64,000 nt of DNA from sequence record MH595538.1; one strand, written 5' to 3'. The position numbers were made by a program, and so were the translations under genes. Position 1 is the first letter of the stretch; the number at the start of each line of letters is the position of its first letter. The notes beneath the pieces are model-generated. The model was not told the origin of the DNA, did no database searches, and worked only from the letters and a program-made list of their open reading frames with translations. Positions 6,148 to 62,031 of the stretch are shown here, in pieces.

Positions 6148-8115
6148 ATGGGCGACCACGGATTTAATCGTAGCAACGAAGCAAACAACCCAGAAACTAA
6201 TGAGCAAGCCCAAGTAAATGCTCAAGATCAACAAAGCATGCAATCGACTGCATGGAATGCCCAACCAAGTAACCCGGAGAAGAAAATGTCCGATCAAGAT
6301 AACGACCTTACGATTCAAGACCTGTTGGCCCAGACTGGTCATTCGACTGCCCTAGGCAGCAACAGTTCTGCTGAATTGAAAGACTTCAAAGAGAACGTTG
6401 AAGAAGTTCTCAAAAATGATCGTAACGGCAAGATGCTTAAGCTTGACCTGATCACAAACAACCCTAACCTTGCTGCCCCTGGCATCAACCTATGGACCGA
6501 GAACTCTGGTGTTCTGTTCTACTTCTCTATCATTCCTGCGTGTCTGATTGCAGAAGGTCGTCTGAACAACCGCGAAGAATATCTAAACTCTGTTAAGACA
6601 GAAATCGATATGCCGGCTTCTAAAGTCTTCGATAAAGATTACTGTGCGGCAGTAGAGTCTAGCCTGCGCTCTCAAGCAGGTCCGTCTGTGAAGCAAGTAC
6701 GTAACTGTCATTACTACGTATTGCCAGCAAGCATGTCTCTGAAAGATGAGCGTACTGCTAAGATCGTCGTAGACTTGGCGTTCAACTGTATCAGCCAAAA
6801 CATCGCTCCTTCTAAGCCGCTTGCTGCTCAAGCACTGCGCTCTAAGAAGATCGAAGTAACTTTGAACCACCAAGTAAATGACAAGCGTACTTCTCAAACT
6901 ACTGACGGTACTCCGGTAGCGGCAGACGTTGTTGTTAGCATGATGGCGCAAGGCAAGACCGAAAAGAACCAAGGTCCAAACTCTGGCATGGCTCCAATCG
7001 TTCTGTCTCGTTCTTACGTGAAGCTTGATCTAATCAAGATGGATCCTCGTCTAGGCGGCATGGGTATGCATCAAATGCCTTACGGTATGATGCAAGGTCC
7101 AGTTCCAGCGTATCACCCAGTATTGATCTTGACTGATTCTGAAGGTTACGTTGAAGGTTCTTCTACTGTTGTAGAGAACCCAGGTACTTCTGCATGTGCA
7201 TTGGCATCTCTATGTCAGCTAGCCGTTGGCCGTAACTTCATGTCATTGCTTGATACACGCACAAACCACCCACGTAACGTTGGCCTACTAGGTTATGATC
7301 ATGAACCAATGAGCAATGCTCAATGGAATCCTCGTAAACTGGTTGTAGAGCGTACTAACCAAGCATCTAAAGAAGATCACCGTACCATGCAAGAAATGGG
7401 TGAGTTCTTCTTCCATCCAAACAGCATGACTGTAATGATGGATATCGGTGATGGCACACGTTCTTCTTACGCACATGCTGTATGGCTAGCGATTGCTAAT
7501 GGCGATACTGATGCGAACGAGTACATGATCTCTATCTTGGATACGTTCACTGGCGGTCACTTCGCTAAGATGTGGGCTGAGACAACCAACAATGCAATGC
7601 TGACTCTTCCAGGTCACACGCTGATTCACAACGGTACTTTCGAAGGCAGCGATGGTGCTCCTCATGACTTGCGTGAAATCGACTACTTCTACATGCTTGA
7701 AGCGTGTAAAGAGCAGTCTGCAGATCCATCAACTGGTGTTGCTCCATTCATGGCGACATTCGCACCTGGCGCTACTAACGGTGCTGATGGTCTACGTGCT
7801 CTGGATGTACGTCGTAAGGCTTACCATAACTTCGATCCAACGGTAACGATCACTGGGTTCTCTCGTCGTGTAACTATGCATCAACAGCTATCAATGGTAA
7901 TTGCTCGTGCTGTACATGCTGCTAACCTACACTTCAACCCATCTGGTCTTTACGATGAGCAGACTAACCATCAGCTTGCATACCAAGGCTTCGTACCTGG
8001 TACTGCGGTTGACCATGCAATGGTATCTGCGATTCTACAGCCTCAGTTCAACCAGAACGGTCAGAACATCTATGGTCACAACCCATACATGCCTGGCGGT
8101 GGTTGGGGTCGATAA
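6148..8115 (+). CDS. chmA: Chimallin, major phage-nucleus shell protein (phiKZ gp54-like)
   Basis: 655 aa, expected size, disordered N- and C-termini, strongly biased high-expression codons; directly upstream of nvRNAP beta'-N, the known chimallin position. Assignment rests mainly on synteny and size. Confidence 0.8.
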   Translation: MGDHGFNRSNEANNPETNEQAQVNAQDQQSMQSTAWNAQPSNPEKKMSDQDNDLTIQDLLAQTGHSTALGSNSSAELKDFKENVEEVLKNDRNGKMLKLDLITNNPNLAAPGINLWTENSGVLFYFSIIPACLIAEGRLNNREEYLNSVKTEIDMPASKVFDKDYCAAVESSLRSQAGPSVKQVRNCHYYVLPASMSLKDERTAKIVVDLAFNCISQNIAPSKPLAAQALRSKKIEVTLNHQVNDKRTSQTTDGTPVAADVVVSMMAQGKTEKNQGPNSGMAPIVLSRSYVKLDLIKMDPRLGGMGMHQMPYGMMQGPVPAYHPVLILTDSEGYVEGSSTVVENPGTSACALASLCQLAVGRNFMSLLDTRTNHPRNVGLLGYDHEPMSNAQWNPRKLVVERTNQASKEDHRTMQEMGEFFFHPNSMTVMMDIGDGTRSSYAHAVWLAIANGDTDANEYMISILDTFTGGHFAKMWAETTNNAMLTLPGHTLIHNGTFEGSDGAPHDLREIDYFYMLEACKEQSADPSTGVAPFMATFAPGATNGADGLRALDVRRKAYHNFDPTVTITGFSRRVTMHQQLSMVIARAVHAANLHFNPSGLYDEQTNHQLAYQGFVPGTAVDHAMVSAILQPQFNQNGQNIYGHNPYMPGGGWGR

Positions 8116-23656: not shown

Positions 23657-25198
23657 ATGCGTGTAGTAATTCAATCCCATGGATTTTTCTGTTATCCAGA
23701 GGGAGATCTAGAACGCACCGTCCTTGACAGGTTTGCCGGAAGGTTTATTCAGACTGAAAAGTCTATGGATCCTAGAACCAAGCAGATCGTCGAGAATGTG
23801 AAAGCGTATTATGGTACATTGACTGCCGATAAAAATGAATATGGTTTCTTAAGAAGAGCACTGCCAGAATTTGAAAAATTCATGAGTGAATCAGGTTTTG
23901 GCCATCGGGTAAAGTACGAGCAGAAACAGCGCTATACTCCATCCCGTCATTCGGATATGAATATCGTTCCTCCGTTTGCTCCTCGTGGTCAACAGTCAGA
24001 GGCTTTAGCTTATGCTATAGCAGACGCTCTAGATCGCACGATAGAGGCCGCTACTGGTTTTGGTAAGACTATCACTGCCTTCTTTGTTATGGATCATTTC
24101 AAGGAGCGTACAGCGGTTGTCATGGGCGCTACCCATATTCCCACGTGGACTTCTTGCGGAAGTCAATATATGGGGATGGGTCCTGGTGACGTGATGGTCA
24201 TCAAGGGATCTGCTAGTCTAAAAGGCGCAGTGAAGCTTGCCCGAGATGGAATGCTCTATTCTAAAGTTCTGTTATTTTCAGCAGAAACCATTCGTAACTT
24301 CATTAAGGAATATGAAGATATCGAACCATCGACTTATGACTTTACTCCGCATGAACTATGGGAATTATTAGGCGTAGGTCGGATATTCAGAGACGAGTCT
24401 CATGAAGCCATTGAGTCTTCAGTGAAACAAGTCATTTACAGCAATGTTCCAAACATCACTTATCTATCGGCAACGTTAGTTTCTGATAATTCGTACATCA
24501 ATAAGATCTACGATTATATCTTCGGTAAGAAGAAGGAGCGTTGGAAATCAGACAATAATAAACACATTGCAGTAAGGCCTCTGTTCCACATGATGAACAG
24601 ATACTTGCTGAAGAAGGGATTCCGTTATAAAGGACCTAGGGGCTACAGTCATGTTCTTTATGAGAAGCATATTCTTAAGCGTAAGCGAGTACTTAAGCAA
24701 TATCTGGATTTCATTGAGAAGTCATTGCATGCGTCCTACTTTAAACGGTATGAACCAGGCATGAAAGCGATTGTGCTGTGTTCATCTATTCCAATGTGTG
24801 AAACCATTAAAAAGTTCTTTTCAGAAAAGTATCCTTCTTTTACCTTTGGTGGCTTTTATGACGGAGCAAAGAAAGAGGAACTTTATGAAAGGGATGTTGT
24901 CATCTCTACTCCTAAGGGTGCAGGTACTGGTAAAGATATCCCTGGACTAGGTGCGCTGATTCAAACTATCGCAGTAAACTCAGTGCAGCTTAACTTACAG
25001 ATTATGGGACGCCTAAGACCAGTAGAGCTTCTAGGAGTTAAAAGGCCGGACATCGAACCTTTATACATTTATTTTGTCAATAATGACATCCCTCAGCATC
25101 GTGCATATCACAATAAGCGACTGCAAGATGTTGCGGATAAATGTAAGGACATAAAGATTATTTACTCCAACTTCTACCTAGGTCAGGATGCAGCATAA
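23657..25198 (+). CDS. Superfamily-2 helicase (gp75-like, UvsW/XPB-related)
   Basis: AATGFGKT Walker A, RDESHE motif II, SAT motif III, TGKDIPGL motif V, QIMGRLR motif VI. Confidence 0.9.
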   Translation: MRVVIQSHGFFCYPEGDLERTVLDRFAGRFIQTEKSMDPRTKQIVENVKAYYGTLTADKNEYGFLRRALPEFEKFMSESGFGHRVKYEQKQRYTPSRHSDMNIVPPFAPRGQQSEALAYAIADALDRTIEAATGFGKTITAFFVMDHFKERTAVVMGATHIPTWTSCGSQYMGMGPGDVMVIKGSASLKGAVKLARDGMLYSKVLLFSAETIRNFIKEYEDIEPSTYDFTPHELWELLGVGRIFRDESHEAIESSVKQVIYSNVPNITYLSATLVSDNSYINKIYDYIFGKKKERWKSDNNKHIAVRPLFHMMNRYLLKKGFRYKGPRGYSHVLYEKHILKRKRVLKQYLDFIEKSLHASYFKRYEPGMKAIVLCSSIPMCETIKKFFSEKYPSFTFGGFYDGAKKEELYERDVVISTPKGAGTGKDIPGLGALIQTIAVNSVQLNLQIMGRLRPVELLGVKRPDIEPLYIYFVNNDIPQHRAYHNKRLQDVADKCKDIKIIYSNFYLGQDAA

Positions 25199-25240
25199 GG
25201 AGGGCAACGCCCTCCTTACTTTTCACGTTTTTTATTTTTT
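25196..25240 (+). terminator. Intrinsic terminator
   Basis: TAAGGAGGGC-AAC-GCCCTCCTTA followed by T tracts. Confidence 0.75.
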
Positions 25241-25245
25241 ACTAA

Positions 25246-25256
25246 ATCTGTTAGAT
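25246..25256 (+). promoter_or_regulatory. ATCTGTTAGAT motif upstream of the ClpP-like pair
   Basis: GTTAGAT core inside the inverted repeat TAAATCT-G-TTAGATTTA. Confidence 0.45.
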
Positions 25257-25275
25257 TTACTAAGGAGTAACTTCT

Positions 25276-25848
25276 ATGAAGCATATTGTCTATTCTAGTC
25301 CTGCTGGCCTGGATATGGAAATCATGACCGCCATGGCAGAAGGCGAGAAGGTTTTCCTTATTGACTTTTTTAACATGTGCGGCAATCCACACGACGCACT
25401 AGAAATTCATGATGACCTTGAAGCATACAAGCGTACTGGACAGGCAACATTCCATGTGCGCTTGCGTGGTCTTACAAGTGTCTTTAATCTCGCAGCCGTA
25501 TCCGCTGCAGATAAAATATGGGTTAATAAACATAACAATGCCTTAATGCATCCCGTGGAATCTTTCGGCTATGGTTCAGCATCTGATCTTTTCCGTGCTG
25601 CTACTCACAACGAAGATCTAACTGCTAAGATAGCAGGTATCGTCACTGATCGTTTTGGTTTAGAAGACAAGAAAGTCAGAGAAATGATGAAAGAAGGCGT
25701 GTTCATCACAGGTGAACAATCGTCTATGTTCAACGGCATTGATGTGATCACTGATCTGCTCGAAACTATTCCTCGTGGAACTATCGAACTTCCCGAAGAT
25801 CAAGATAAACTAAAACGTCAGCACTCAGGAATAGAAGGAGAAGGATAA
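25276..25848 (+). CDS. Degenerate ClpP-family protein (nucleophile region altered)
   Basis: GNPHDALEIHDDL, RGLTSVFNLAAVSAADKI and LMHPVESFGYGSASDL align by eye to ClpP GG..G.AI, GLAAS and MIH...G.A.DL. Confidence 0.65.
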   Translation: MKHIVYSSPAGLDMEIMTAMAEGEKVFLIDFFNMCGNPHDALEIHDDLEAYKRTGQATFHVRLRGLTSVFNLAAVSAADKIWVNKHNNALMHPVESFGYGSASDLFRAATHNEDLTAKIAGIVTDRFGLEDKKVREMMKEGVFITGEQSSMFNGIDVITDLLETIPRGTIELPEDQDKLKRQHSGIEGEG

Positions 25849-26339
25849 TGGAAAACAGAACCATCATCATCTCAGGTCCTATTAACTCCGCTGTTGCAAC
25901 AATGGTTTGTCTTAAGATAGAAAAACTAGCGCTAGAATCTAAAGAAGATATCTATGTCAAGATCTCTTCATACGGAGGCTGTATCGCTTCAATGCTAGCC
26001 ATTGTCGATTGTTTTGATACAGTCCCTAATGACATCGTCACTATCGTTAAAGGTAAGGCTATGTCAGCTGGTTCTTTTATCTCAGTACATGGCACTCCGG
26101 GTAAACGCTATGCGCACTCTAATGCTTCTTACATGTTCCATGAGCCAAATGGCTTTGCAGAACTAACTGAAAAGGGCATTGAACATATGATGTATGTTAA
26201 AGAGCTGACCACTAAGCTTCTTGCTGAACGTACGGGTCTTTCTATTGCAGAGATGGAAAAGATTGCAGATCGCGATTTCTATACTTTTGCCAGTGATCTT
26301 ATTGATCATCCAGGTAGTTTTGTAGATCATCTTGTTTGA
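25848..26339 (+). CDS. clpP: ClpP-family serine protease
   Basis: IIISGPI, ISSYGG, GKAMSAG (Ser), YMFHEP (His), DRDFY (Asp). Confidence 0.88.
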   Translation: MENRTIIISGPINSAVATMVCLKIEKLALESKEDIYVKISSYGGCIASMLAIVDCFDTVPNDIVTIVKGKAMSAGSFISVHGTPGKRYAHSNASYMFHEPNGFAELTEKGIEHMMYVKELTTKLLAERTGLSIAEMEKIADRDFYTFASDLIDHPGSFVDHLV

Positions 26340-26346
26340 TATAATA

Positions 26347-26374
26347 CTTACTCTCCCCATGCGGGGAGAGTAAG
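26347..26374. terminator. Bidirectional terminator
   Basis: CTTACTCTCCCC-ATGC-GGGGAGAGTAAG between convergent genes. Confidence 0.8.
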
Positions 26375-26832: not shown

Positions 26833-28389
26833 CTAGTTCTTCAGGTACTGACTCACCCCCGAGATAACGAAAAAATACGACGCCGTATTAATCGGAATCA
26901 TTGGGAAGTGCTCATCAAGAACAGCTTCTTGAGAAGAATGACACGCAGGACATTCATAGTTTGTTAAGCCAGCAAACGTGTATTGAACCTGACTGCGGTA
27001 TTTATCGATCATGTCAATAACCGCTTCGCGTAAATCAGAACGAGCAGATAGTTTCTCTAGAGAACGTAATATCTCATTTCGATCAGACTCTTCTTTAGTA
27101 TAGTCGGTGCCTTCCAGTTTAAGCTTTTCAATCCATGAACTTAAACGCTGAGTCTTTAGGACGTCGATATTGGCCTGTAAGCTTTCCATGCGCTTTTCAG
27201 CCAGTTCGTTGTTACTTAAGCCTAGGTCTTCTTCCATGATTGCATCAGTGCGCATAATGATAGATTGAACCCATGCCATGCCTTCTTCACAGTAGCGATC
27301 GAACATAGGCGGTTTAAGAACGAGATAAGTACGAGCTTTACCATTATCGTTAATCGGACCTACTTTGTTAGACTCGCGGTTATATTCAGACAGTCGATCA
27401 CGATAAGTCGGCAATACTGATTCATCTAGGCTATCCCAATCAGCAGCAAGTTGATTGCGCATTTCAGGACTGAACTTAGAGGCGTCATGTACATGAGCAC
27501 GATTAAAGTGCAGGCGCATTAAATGACGCATGCGATCTTCAAGATCCCATGTATTGTAATCACACTTCTTATCTTCGTTAAGGCTATTCGCACAAGTACG
27601 CAGGATAGGGAAGCCTTTCGGATACGATGAAGCCAGTGCGCCGATGTGAAGCGCTGGTATATCGCGAACATCCAGCCAGGACTTAATCTTAGCCTGATTC
27701 CATCCTTTAACAGAGCAACGCTTAGTATGCTCTATGATAAGGTTACCTATCTCGCGTTGAATGTGAACATCATCGTTTGAGAACAATAGACCTTTAGTAT
27801 CAATGCCGACGCGATCACGCAATTGACTGATCTTACCGATTAAGTACACTAGTGTAGAGGGGGAGAAGTCGTCTACTTCAATGCGAAATCCACTATGCCA
27901 GAAGACAATCTCAACCGGTACACCAAGGCCAAGTTCTGATGACATCGCTGAAGCAAAGTCAAACTTATCTGCTCGTTGTTCGTCGATGATAGGTTCTTTA
28001 GGAACAATACCTAGTAAACGATCGCCATGTGGCGTAATGTTAGAAGGCTCTTTAAAGTCATTGAGCATTTCAATTAGCTCTTCTTTAGGCACATAACCTT
28101 CTAAGCTATCCATCAGTGCACGATACATTCTCTTTTGTGCATCAGTTGGCTTCGATTTAGTTTCCTGAAGAATCTTGTTGAAGTGCTGCTTAATCTCAGT
28201 TTCGGTCATATGGCGACCAGGCGTTTGAAGATAGATATCTTCTTTAGGGCCTTTAAACTGAGTATTAGGCAGGCGCATATTCTGGCCCTTCGTGCTTTTA
28301 TTTTCAACAGATTGTTCTTCAGGAACAGCAGGATCTGGAATGCCAGCGTCTGTTGGACCGATTGGTTCATTATAATCTTGATCGGACAT
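26833..28389 (-). CDS. Probable baseplate hub assembly or virion protein (T4 gp26-like region)
   Basis: Start at MSDQDY after SD GGAG; HSGFRIEV, DIPALHIG, GFPILRTC and C-terminal YECPAC motifs. Confidence 0.6.
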   Translation of the reverse strand: MSDQDYNEPIGPTDAGIPDPAVPEEQSVENKSTKGQNMRLPNTQFKGPKEDIYLQTPGRHMTETEIKQHFNKILQETKSKPTDAQKRMYRALMDSLEGYVPKEELIEMLNDFKEPSNITPHGDRLLGIVPKEPIIDEQRADKFDFASAMSSELGLGVPVEIVFWHSGFRIEVDDFSPSTLVYLIGKISQLRDRVGIDTKGLLFSNDDVHIQREIGNLIIEHTKRCSVKGWNQAKIKSWLDVRDIPALHIGALASSYPKGFPILRTCANSLNEDKKCDYNTWDLEDRMRHLMRLHFNRAHVHDASKFSPEMRNQLAADWDSLDESVLPTYRDRLSEYNRESNKVGPINDNGKARTYLVLKPPMFDRYCEEGMAWVQSIIMRTDAIMEEDLGLSNNELAEKRMESLQANIDVLKTQRLSSWIEKLKLEGTDYTKEESDRNEILRSLEKLSARSDLREAVIDMIDKYRSQVQYTFAGLTNYECPACHSSQEAVLDEHFPMIPINTASYFFVISGVSQYLKN

Positions 28390-28390
28390 T

Positions 28391-28747
28391 TTATTCTCCA
28401 TTAACATATGTTTCAATTTGTGAAATGATGCCGTTGATCTTCAGGATATAGGCTTTTAATTCGGCATGGCAATTTAAGAAAGCTTGGATTTCATCCAGCA
28501 TTACTTCTTGCATTGCGTTATGTGATTGAATGAATGGCTTAACCGAGCGGCTGTATTCTTCATCGATGATGATCAGTTCATGTAACATACGCTGACCTGC
28601 TGTTGCCAGTGTAGTTTGGTTTTCAGGTGTAGCCGAATAGACCATTGCTTTAACAGCCTCTTGTGTTTGGAACCTGGCATTGACGTAAAGGCCATCGAGT
28701 TCGATGACATCTTTCCAATAGTAAGGAATTCTTTGTTCTGTAGACAT
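28391..28747 (-). CDS. Hypothetical helical protein
   Basis: 118-aa ORF abutting the next gene; its 3' end carries the SD of that gene. Confidence 0.65.
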   Translation of the reverse strand: MSTEQRIPYYWKDVIELDGLYVNARFQTQEAVKAMVYSATPENQTTLATAGQRMLHELIIIDEEYSRSVKPFIQSHNAMQEVMLDEIQAFLNCHAELKAYILKINGIISQIETYVNGE

Positions 28748-60459: not shown

Positions 60460-62031
60460 ATGGTTGACCCCGATATTATCTCCTATATGGAGAAGGACCG
60501 CCCTGTATGGAACCGAAAGGTTTGTGAGGGCCTGGCAATATCAGAAATGCCTAAGGTAGCACCAGAGTTAGATCGTGTCATACGCTGCGGTTTAGATGAA
60601 TGTGTCGAAGGACTCAAGTATGTTGATTGTCAACGTACCGATCCTCGTGAGCATTTAGCTGAATCAGTGCGAGCCAGGAACGGCAAGCATCAGCTAGAAC
60701 AGACCAGATCGAACCTGGTAATGCATAAATTCAGATTCACTTTTAGAGGAAAGCCATTACATAAATATTTAGCCATTCCGTATGTCGATAGCCAGGGCTT
60801 CCTGGTGATGCGTGATACGAACTATGTTATCTCGCCCACAATGGATAACAAGTTTCATGGCGTTGATAAGGGACTTATCTTTGTTCCGTTTACAAGACTG
60901 CGTGTTAAGTTCTTCCGTGAGCCACATCACTTCTTGTCTGATCGCCGTATGGTTACTGCCGATACTTATTGGTCACGTATCCATACAGTGGGTAAGAATG
61001 ATGCTGCGACCAATCGTAATCCACAGCTATTGAATTATCTCATGTGCTGGATGGGTGCGACTCAAGCATTTAAGTTCATGGATGTCAATGCAGTCTTTGG
61101 TGATGAAGATAGCTTAAACGAAGTTGATTTCCCTCGTGACGAATGGGTCATTTGTCGTAGCAGCGGACTTAAACCTCGTGCTAGAATGTCTAACTACATT
61201 CCGCCTAAGACCATGGTTGCAATTAAGAGAAGCGAGTATTCAAGACATACAGAAAACATCCTGGCGTCTTTCTTCTATATTCTCGATAACTGCAGCGATT
61301 GGGATTTCTTAACTCCAGAAAATATGGATCAGGTTCAAGTATGGCGCCGTGCCCTATGTCGCTTTATCTGGAAGAACCCTGACCCTAGACTTTCATTAGA
61401 AGAGTTAGATACTCACATGGCTGGCTTAGAAGAATACATCGACGAGATTATTCAGAATAAGCTAAGGGCAGAACGTATCAATGTCAGTAACATTCAAGAG
61501 TTCTTCAAGTATCTTATTGATAACTTTTCGAATATCGTACTTGACAATGATCCAGCAGGTGTATTAGGTAAGCAACTAAGCATCGTCCCACAGGTTACAT
61601 TCTCTGTGGTCAAGATGATCAATAATGTTATGTTCATTCTCAAGCGTGTTCCAAAAGAACGCCTTACGGAGAAAAAGATTATTGATGTCTTTAATCGAAA
61701 CTTCAGTGCGGCTAAGTTCATGCTGTTAACAACTCCTGAACATCCAGAAGTACAAATGGCTGAATCCGCTACCTCGTGTCTTCCTAAGAAGATCACAAGT
61801 GTAATGGTGAGACCGAGTCGTACTTCAGGTAGTCAAACAGGTCAATCTCAGGACCCGCAGAACATTCTACATCATGACTTTATTCGTATACACAGCGTAC
61901 GAATGGTAACCAAGGCATCGTTCTCGGCAACCGGTCGTATCAATCCGAATGTAATGCTGAGTCCAACCAATGAGATTATTGAAGATCCAAGACTTACGCC
62001 ATATGCTGAAGAATTTAAACGACTCAGGTAG
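60460..62031 (+). CDS. rpoB: nvRNAP beta N-terminal subunit (gp123-like)
   Basis: YLAIPYV...FLVMRDTNYVISP matches the beta N-terminal region; C-terminal HHDF...GRINP; follows the capsid unit as gp123 does. Confidence 0.75.
   Translation: MVDPDIISYMEKDRPVWNRKVCEGLAISEMPKVAPELDRVIRCGLDECVEGLKYVDCQRTDPREHLAESVRARNGKHQLEQTRSNLVMHKFRFTFRGKPLHKYLAIPYVDSQGFLVMRDTNYVISPTMDNKFHGVDKGLIFVPFTRLRVKFFREPHHFLSDRRMVTADTYWSRIHTVGKNDAATNRNPQLLNYLMCWMGATQAFKFMDVNAVFGDEDSLNEVDFPRDEWVICRSSGLKPRARMSNYIPPKTMVAIKRSEYSRHTENILASFFYILDNCSDWDFLTPENMDQVQVWRRALCRFIWKNPDPRLSLEELDTHMAGLEEYIDEIIQNKLRAERINVSNIQEFFKYLIDNFSNIVLDNDPAGVLGKQLSIVPQVTFSVVKMINNVMFILKRVPKERLTEKKIIDVFNRNFSAAKFMLLTTPEHPEVQMAESATSCLPKKITSVMVRPSRTSGSQTGQSQDPQNILHHDFIRIHSVRMVTKASFSATGRINPNVMLSPTNEIIEDPRLTPYAEEFKRLR

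Follow-up and report, generated by a model that had tools for sequence, protein, structure and literature searches.

ClpP is a protease with a gated pore that depends on ATPase partners; it is also a drug target, and forcing its pore open is lethal to bacteria. In cyanobacteria and plastids an active ClpP is found beside ClpR, a ClpP-fold paralogue that lacks the catalytic triad and has been kept over long evolutionary time, as in the clpP3-clpR operon of Synechococcus; the ClpP3/R core retains its N-terminal region, works with the ClpC unfoldase and is built of mixed heptameric rings of 3:4 composition. In Mycobacterium, Listeria and Streptomyces, adjacent genes encode two paralogues, ClpP1 and ClpP2, both full-length and catalytically competent, which join in one ATPase-dependent hetero-complex. 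Here we analyze a stretch of 64,000 nucleotides from sequence record MH595538.1 (hereafter the window), which corresponds to approximately positions 62001–126000 of the 289-kb genome of Vibrio phage BONAISHI (100% identity at 87200–88400), and within it a cassette of two overlapping open reading frames (ORFs), ORF1 and ORF2, equivalent to BONAISHI ORF86 and ORF87. An earlier note on this DNA had likened the pair to ClpP/ClpR or to ClpP1P2. With one subunit predicted to be dead and the other intact, the first likeness stands, whereas the second founders on the two active subunits of ClpP1P2. The phage proteins, which we presume to co-assemble like the subunits of either complex, also depart from both: unlike ClpP/ClpR, the two are N-terminally truncated, the active one carries a shorter handle helix and natural fusions impose a 1:1 ratio; unlike ClpP1P2, neither has a docking and gating region.

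Other phage-encoded ClpPs offer further comparisons. The patchy distribution of ClpP among jumbo phages, including 'group 1', has been noted previously (Iyer et al. 2021, PMC7824862), and in RaK2-like phages ClpP is accompanied by phage ClpX/ClpA/ClpS homologues (PMC6102473). Like the BONAISHI pair, the stand-alone ClpPs of RaK2-like and other jumbo phages are encoded outside the head module, but they are single, longer genes (249 amino acids in RaK2, 233 in Vibrio phage 2.275.O, 214 in XaC1) with no adjoining pseudo-ClpP. The ClpP-related head-maturation proteases of phages (NF045542; PHROG 94, 2976, 1684) share with our pair a ClpP fold without the N-terminal axial region; they are encoded in the head module, in many cases as fusions with a scaffold or capsid protein, whereas the pair lies in another context and scores under the cut-offs. 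BONAISHI itself is a phiKZ-like jumbo phage infecting Vibrio coralliilyticus and has been assigned to the nucleus-forming family Chimalliviridae, with ORF71 as its chimallin (PMC10587174). Prior annotation already labelled ORF86 and ORF87 as Clp, on BLAST hits of 5e-5 and 1e-27 that the BONAISHI paper leaves undiscussed. We found no paper in the literature that characterizes the ORF1/ORF2 pair, and the conserved pairing of a dead with an active subunit, their shared truncations and their fusions appear to be undescribed.

Fold and catalytic residues of the two proteins

Is either protein a member of the ClpP family proper? ORF2 (25848–26339, + strand; 163 amino acids) matches the Pfam family CLP_protease (PF00574) at 1.6e-30 (106.8 bits, cut-off 20.2) and ClpPs in the PDB at 5.9e-25 at best. 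Against the cellular ClpP models of NCBIfam it reaches 98 bits, under the equivalog cut-off of 228, and must therefore be a divergent member; it lies nearer to the ClpPs of Firmicutes and of the candidate phyla radiation type (91 bits) than to gammaproteobacterial ClpP (67 bits for E. coli ClpP). Ser73 (in GKAMS), His98 (FHEP) and Asp143 (DRD) align to the catalytic residues of ClpP, and this Ser-His-Asp triad is invariant in all 16 rows of an alignment of three cellular ClpPs with 13 phage relatives, three of the latter being C-terminal domains taken from fusion proteins. Judged by its sequence, ORF2 is a true ClpP with a complete predicted triad, and as such a serine peptidase.

What sets this ClpP apart is what it lacks. 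The first residue of ORF2 corresponds to about residue 26 of full-length ClpP, so that approximately 24 N-terminal residues, comprising the axial loops and helix A, are gone; no in-frame start codon exists further upstream. The handle helix is four residues shorter, the deletion falling at the start of the helix, and this could change the contacts between rings. Both the N-terminal truncation and the four-residue deletion recur in 13 of 13 phage relatives. Tyr63 of S. aureus ClpP is central to the hydrophobic pocket that receives acyldepsipeptides or the IGF/LGF loops of the ATPases ClpX, ClpA and ClpC. At the matching position (Tyr62 in E. coli), the single position of the pocket that was mapped, ORF2 carries Lys, and its family K, F, I, V, P, L or A.

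ORF1 (25276–25848, + strand; 190 amino acids) is far more divergent: taken alone, it has no Pfam match and reaches E~0.07 against ClpP structures. A profile of its family (37 members), in contrast, matches PDB ClpP with E=1.3e-18 across nearly the whole length, and hhalign relates the ORF1 and ORF2 families with 96.8% probability. The AlphaFold2 model of ORF1 has a predicted local distance difference test score (pLDDT) of 91.5 and a predicted template modelling score (pTM) of 0.80, with residues 1–160 confident and 161–190 disordered. When this model was submitted to Foldseek, all 50 of the top 50 PDB matches were ClpPs, at a template modelling score (TM) of ~0.67 and ~13% identity. The core, residues 1–160, begins at strand beta1 and is devoid of axial loop and helix A. 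Its handle helix is full-length (residues 102–127, 26 residues), and the disordered C-terminal tail (residues 161–190, window 25756–25845) is net-acidic. The earlier note had assigned the ClpP fold to both proteins, had found the axial loop absent from both, and had recognized the triad and the shortened handle of ORF2; the matches, alignments and models bear it out on each of these points.

The catalytic center of ORF1 is another matter. In a profile-profile alignment with a one-residue gap, Ser68 aligns with the catalytic Ser and His92 with the catalytic His, while Gly141 stands in place of the catalytic Asp and Glu140 in place of the Arg of the RD motif; pairwise phmmer instead sets Leu66 at the Ser position. 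The note was thus right about the full handle and the lost RD motif of ORF1, whereas the serine it described as out of register is so only in some alignments. Across the 37 family members the Ser column holds Ser in 16, Thr in 12 and other residues in 9; His is found in 6 at its position, Asp in 2, and the full triad in none. Since the catalytic columns are unconserved, we call the family inactive: as a whole, and by the residues it carries, it is a ClpR-like pseudoprotease. What the family does conserve is non-catalytic, namely ALG.yD in helix B, AAAv..kR, G.y.DL in the handle and a terminal Gly. An exhaustive profile search recovered ~35 clusters at 50% identity, mostly of 155–235 amino acids (a word-indexed search gave 4); a scan of IMG/VR with the family profile returned no relatives. 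The likeness to ClpR is meant as functional analogy only, as no tree could be expected to settle descent when identity to ClpP is as low as ~13%.

Some features of the pseudo-ClpPs concern their C-termini and start codons. Tails of at least 12 residues occur in 14 of 34 pseudo-ClpPs, and 10 of these 14 are net acidic by at least 3. In one metagenomic lineage the pseudo-ClpP gene is separated from the ClpP gene by a mini-ORF of 48 amino acids, extremely acidic and with runs of D/E (L023:6516-6662), with a counterpart of 45 amino acids at L024:2197-2334; the pseudo-ClpP P0009 (165 amino acids), from a lineage with such a separate mini-ORF, has no C-terminal tail. The acidic segment seems to be modular, able to be joined to the pseudo-ClpP or to stand by itself. 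Many C-termini end in Gly-Glu/Asp (IEGEG, QLGE, PEGE, NEGD, KEGE and KEGDS, among ORF1, P0003, P0006, P0016, P0020 and P0023), a putative motif that might serve as a docking or recognition signal. The start annotated for the pseudo-ClpP of phage pir03 (QNI21073, L002:3465-3989) probably lies 13 codons upstream of the true one: the protein of phage C-ZP2022 (P0002, 161 amino acids), with which it shares 97.5% identity, and all other relatives begin at a later Met (MYKTSTL).

Conservation and natural fusions of the pair

How strictly are the two genes kept together? The earlier note had called for a survey of jumbo phages, and the pair proved to be retained well beyond BONAISHI. It follows the RNA polymerase beta, beta' and helicase genes in eight Vibrio jumbo phage isolates: BONAISHI, pir03, C-ZP2022, Yong XC31, sm033 and three near-identical relatives of Yong, which were counted on an ORF2 homologue at coordinates identical to those of Yong XC31. 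The shared order is RNA polymerase beta, RNA polymerase beta', superfamily 2 (SF2) helicase, zero to two small genes, pseudo-ClpP and short ClpP. The pair also recurs in many metagenomic chimallivirus contigs: the two genes are likewise adjacent and in the same order in five unrelated ones, and the shared arrangement was seen in every metagenomic contig inspected for family members. Adjacency and order hold at every locus examined. The partners have diverged at different rates, with mean identities of ~27% for the pseudo-subunit and ~36% for ClpP, and ClpP is the more conserved in 41 of 45 comparisons. Faster divergence of the pseudo-subunit is what would be expected if it has no catalytic role and is held by structural constraint alone.

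Erwinia phage RAY, Pseudomonas phage PA7 and Vibrio phages Aphrodite1 and pVp-JHP1101 do not carry the cassette in the slot behind the helicase; the cassette is a clade-specific accessory module rather than a chimallivirus core gene. In these four phages (L027–L030) the slot is filled by small hypothetical genes that differ from one lineage to the next: its position is constant and its content variable. The cassette had previously been described as inserted after the SF2 helicase. Its position is as stated, but the fixed location across a deep clade and the depth of divergence of both partners mark it as an old feature of the clade, not a recent insertion. On a 204-kb contig with a fused ClpP, a Macro-domain protein (PF01661, 1.1e-4, just above the cut-off) is encoded between the helicase and the fusion (L018:5504-5953), which suggests that the slot gathers accessory, possibly anti-host, genes. 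Elsewhere in the family, the Clp protease gene ORF191 of the Aeromonas chimallivirus Z90 adjoins its GroEL chaperonin gene ORF192 (PMC12837969), and the Klebsiella chimallivirus N1M2 has a single Clp-like protein of 215 amino acids, seen as a BFVD match. Chimalliviruses seem to have acquired ClpP-fold genes on more than one occasion and in differing contexts.

Three lineages fuse pseudo-ClpP and ClpP into one protein, with the order unchanged: P0017 (348 amino acids), P0025 (340) and P0036 (330). The fusions sit at the equivalent locus on phage contigs of 117–204 kb; the search for others, swamped by ordinary ClpPs, yielded none beyond these three. A tree of ClpP domains, on which the fusions occupy long branches, left its deep nodes unresolved as to a repeated origin of the fusions. 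The fusion of neighbouring genes is a classical sign that their products associate physically, and in phages with the fused form the stoichiometry is bound to be 1:1. Together, strict adjacency and three fusions strongly suggest a hetero-complex of ORF1 and ORF2.

AlphaFold2 predicts P0017 as two ClpP-fold domains (pLDDT 90.8, pTM 0.90) joined by a confidently placed linker of ~22 residues, with a handle helix of 26 residues in the N-terminal domain against 22 in the C-terminal one. The deep alignment supplied for this model covered the N-terminal half only, because paired alignment by MAFFT had set single-domain partners on the wrong half. Given where the termini of ClpP lie, a short, ordered linker of this kind would more readily join domains that are side by side than span the distance between the two ends of a double-ring barrel. 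A ring of seven cannot be closed by subunits that alternate 1:1. A precedent for the tandem is E. coli SppA (family S49, same clan), in which tandem ClpP-like domains, one of them bearing the nucleophile, are packed side by side into a ring. SppA resembles the fused variants in this respect; it differs in using a Ser-Lys dyad and in being membrane-anchored, whereas the phage proteins have Ser-His-Asp residues and match S14 ClpP in sequence.

A proposed phage-specific peptidase and competing explanations

From these results we propose, with a probability of roughly 60%, that ORF1 and ORF2 together make up a ClpP-type peptidase, hetero-oligomeric and independent of ATPases, with ORF1 as the non-catalytic partner. 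The two genes would be co-transcribed and translationally coupled, and their products would assemble into a phage-specific complex. ORF2 would supply the Ser-His-Asp active sites, and ORF1 would be a structural or regulatory subunit, as ClpR is for ClpP3 in cyanobacteria. As neither subunit has N-terminal loops or helix A and the docking Tyr is unconserved, the complex is most likely independent of AAA+ partners; the text and annotation table of the BONAISHI paper contain no ATPase, AAA or ClpX term. The entrance would be open or differently controlled, and the complex would be at work in the infected cell, cleaving peptides and proteins that are unfolded or disordered, and not in head maturation. 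Possible substrates are proteins of the host or of its defence, along with unfolded proteins and peptides. The analysis shows the folds, the catalytic status of each subunit, the truncations, the conserved adjacency, the fusions and the presence of a separate prohead protease; we infer the physical co-assembly, the ATPase independence, the site of action and the substrates.

Why would this matter? Throughout a clade of marine phages that form a nucleus, ClpP has been retained although gate and docking region were naturally lost, and it invariably comes with a dead ClpP-fold partner, in some cases as a fusion. If the enzyme is autonomous, it would be a natural case of an ungated ClpP kept useful rather than self-destructive, an example of what a pseudoprotease subunit contributes, and would point to a protease activity used by chimalliviruses inside their host. 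Phage therapy in coral and aquaculture settings has been suggested for BONAISHI and pir03, and for such use the role of an accessory protease is relevant, if of modest practical weight.

Several points tell against this proposal. Co-assembly of ORF1 and ORF2 is deduced from gene adjacency and fusion, and the Foldseek search with the P0017 model (PDB and BFVD; top 50) matched one domain at a time, with no two-domain match among those 50. The lack of a phage unfoldase is read from annotation only, and host ClpX/ClpA may dock through another surface. BONAISHI ORF1 keeps Ser68 and His92, so that this copy may have residual activity. Finally, the best PHROG and NCBIfam matches of ORF1 are ClpP-related head-maturation proteases.

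Could the pair be directed at the host Clp machinery instead? It might, as the note had also suggested, poison host ClpP by co-assembly, or serve host ClpX/ClpA as an alternative core and redirect degradation, for example at defence proteins. ClpP-fold subunits can form mixed complexes, as ClpP1P2 and ClpP/R illustrate, and the post-helicase slot holds variable accessory genes elsewhere, including the Macro-domain gene. Iyer et al. 2021 (PMC7824862) took the patchy distribution of phage ClpPs as a sign of use against the host, and reported ClpS adaptors in other jumbo phages. We nevertheless regard host interference as unlikely: the N-terminal loops and helix A are missing from both subunits and the docking-pocket Tyr is unconserved, and ORF2, not being closest to gammaproteobacterial ClpP, has ring interfaces not obviously matched to those of Vibrio ClpP. 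The fusions, moreover, point to the phage pseudo-subunit as its partner. A triad that stays invariant over deep divergence is needless for a pure poison, and together with the poorly conserved docking pocket it favours a protease that works on its own over one that poisons host ClpXP. It is decidedly unlikely, too, that the pair serves as a second protease of morphogenesis, acting on head, inner-body or other virion proteins. The note had anticipated that head maturation is left to a different protease, and BONAISHI ORF30 is indeed a prohead protease of the phiKZ type (Peptidase_S80 at 1.5e-82, phrog_3014 at 1.3e-60), so that the ORF1/ORF2 pair is not the head-maturation enzyme. Both proteins do match PHROG 'head maturation protease' families (phrog_94, 2976 and 1684), and NCBIfam Clp_rel_HeadMat (NF045542) detects them at 3.6e-7 (ORF1) and 1.5e-12 (ORF2), but the corresponding scores of 30.3 and 47.8 bits fall far under the cut-off of 120, and ORF2 scores twice as high against the cellular ClpP models. 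Phage head-maturation proteases of this type likewise lack the N-terminal gating region, and the Z90 paper lists its Clp protease under assembly, by annotation only (PMC12837969). The cassette, however, is placed behind the RNA polymerase/helicase genes and ahead of the next conserved block, with terminators of its own and not among head genes, and most chimalliviruses do without it.

Two further explanations concern the partnership itself. ORF1 could be a decaying, functionless duplicate that leaves ORF2 to act alone as a conventional homo-oligomeric ClpP; its lost catalytic Asp and its divergence beyond any Pfam match would fit. An intact ORF of conserved length in ~35 clusters, a confidently predicted fold, conserved non-catalytic motifs, translational coupling to ORF2 and fusion to an ORF2 homologue in three lineages make such decay scarcely credible. 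The other explanation accepts the complex and questions its shape. The architecture might lie off the heptameric barrel, as an alternating even-numbered ring like that of SppA or another assembly, ungated and ATPase-free, with the tail recruiting basic proteins; in this unlikely version, the acidic tail could draw basic DNA-binding host proteins, of the nucleoid or of defence, to destruction, and this could take place in the cytoplasm, with the phage genome enclosed in the phage nucleus.

Gene layout and neighbouring elements

The layout of the two genes fits translational coupling. A Shine-Dalgarno sequence AAGGAG (25262–25267, + strand) stands 8 nucleotides before the ORF1 ATG, and a second AAGGAG (25835–25840, +) lies within the 3' end of ORF1, 7 nucleotides before the ORF2 ATG. 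The stop and start codons overlap in TAATG (25846–25850, +), where the last A of the ORF1 TAA (25846–25848) is the first base of the ORF2 ATG, exactly as first described. In six of seven relatives with split genes the junction measures −4 to +10 nucleotides. A programmed frameshift joining BONAISHI ORF1 and ORF2 was considered and rejected, as the ORF2 frame is open for just 13 codons upstream and 25809–25848 contains no slippery heptamer.

The cassette is bounded on either side. Upstream, a perfect 9-bp, GC-rich hairpin read from the sequence (25197–25217, +; AAGGAGGGC-AAC-GCCCTCCTT) overlaps the helicase stop codon and is followed by a T-rich tract (25220–25243, +), together a terminator-like boundary; the terminator scan did not flag this hairpin because the T run begins too far from the stem. 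A comparable hairpin and T tract precede the cassette in relatives L003, L020, L022, L023 and L025. Downstream, a hairpin of 12 bp with 7 GC pairs and T runs on either side (26347–26374, both strands) separates ORF2 from the convergent ORF88c; it scored as a terminator on both strands and is thus bidirectional and terminator-like. A matching GC-rich hairpin lies directly 3' of the ClpP gene in L002, L003, L004, L022, L023 and L025. Of the promoter-like motif and terminator that the note had ascribed to the cassette, only the terminator is borne out: scanning the + strand revealed no sigma-70-like promoter, the upstream 17-mer occurs once in the window, no better than chance, and k-mer enrichment upstream of 53 genes reflected A+T richness only. 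Chimalliviruses of this kind use their own RNA polymerases. A loose resemblance to AATCT..TTAG upstream of several cassettes was noted and not relied on. PADLOC returned no match.

Two other genes of the window are of note. BONAISHI ORF71 (window 6148–8115, +) is hypothetical in GenBank and is the chimallin ChmA, the shell of the phage nucleus, according to PMC10587174. BONAISHI ORF89c (window 26833–28416, − strand; 527 amino acids) matches phrog_4585, a family of unassigned function, at 1.2e-49. Reverse-strand genes of similar size follow the cassette in the relatives examined, and a PA7 homologue is listed in the BONAISHI paper; ORF89c appears to be a conserved chimallivirus gene.

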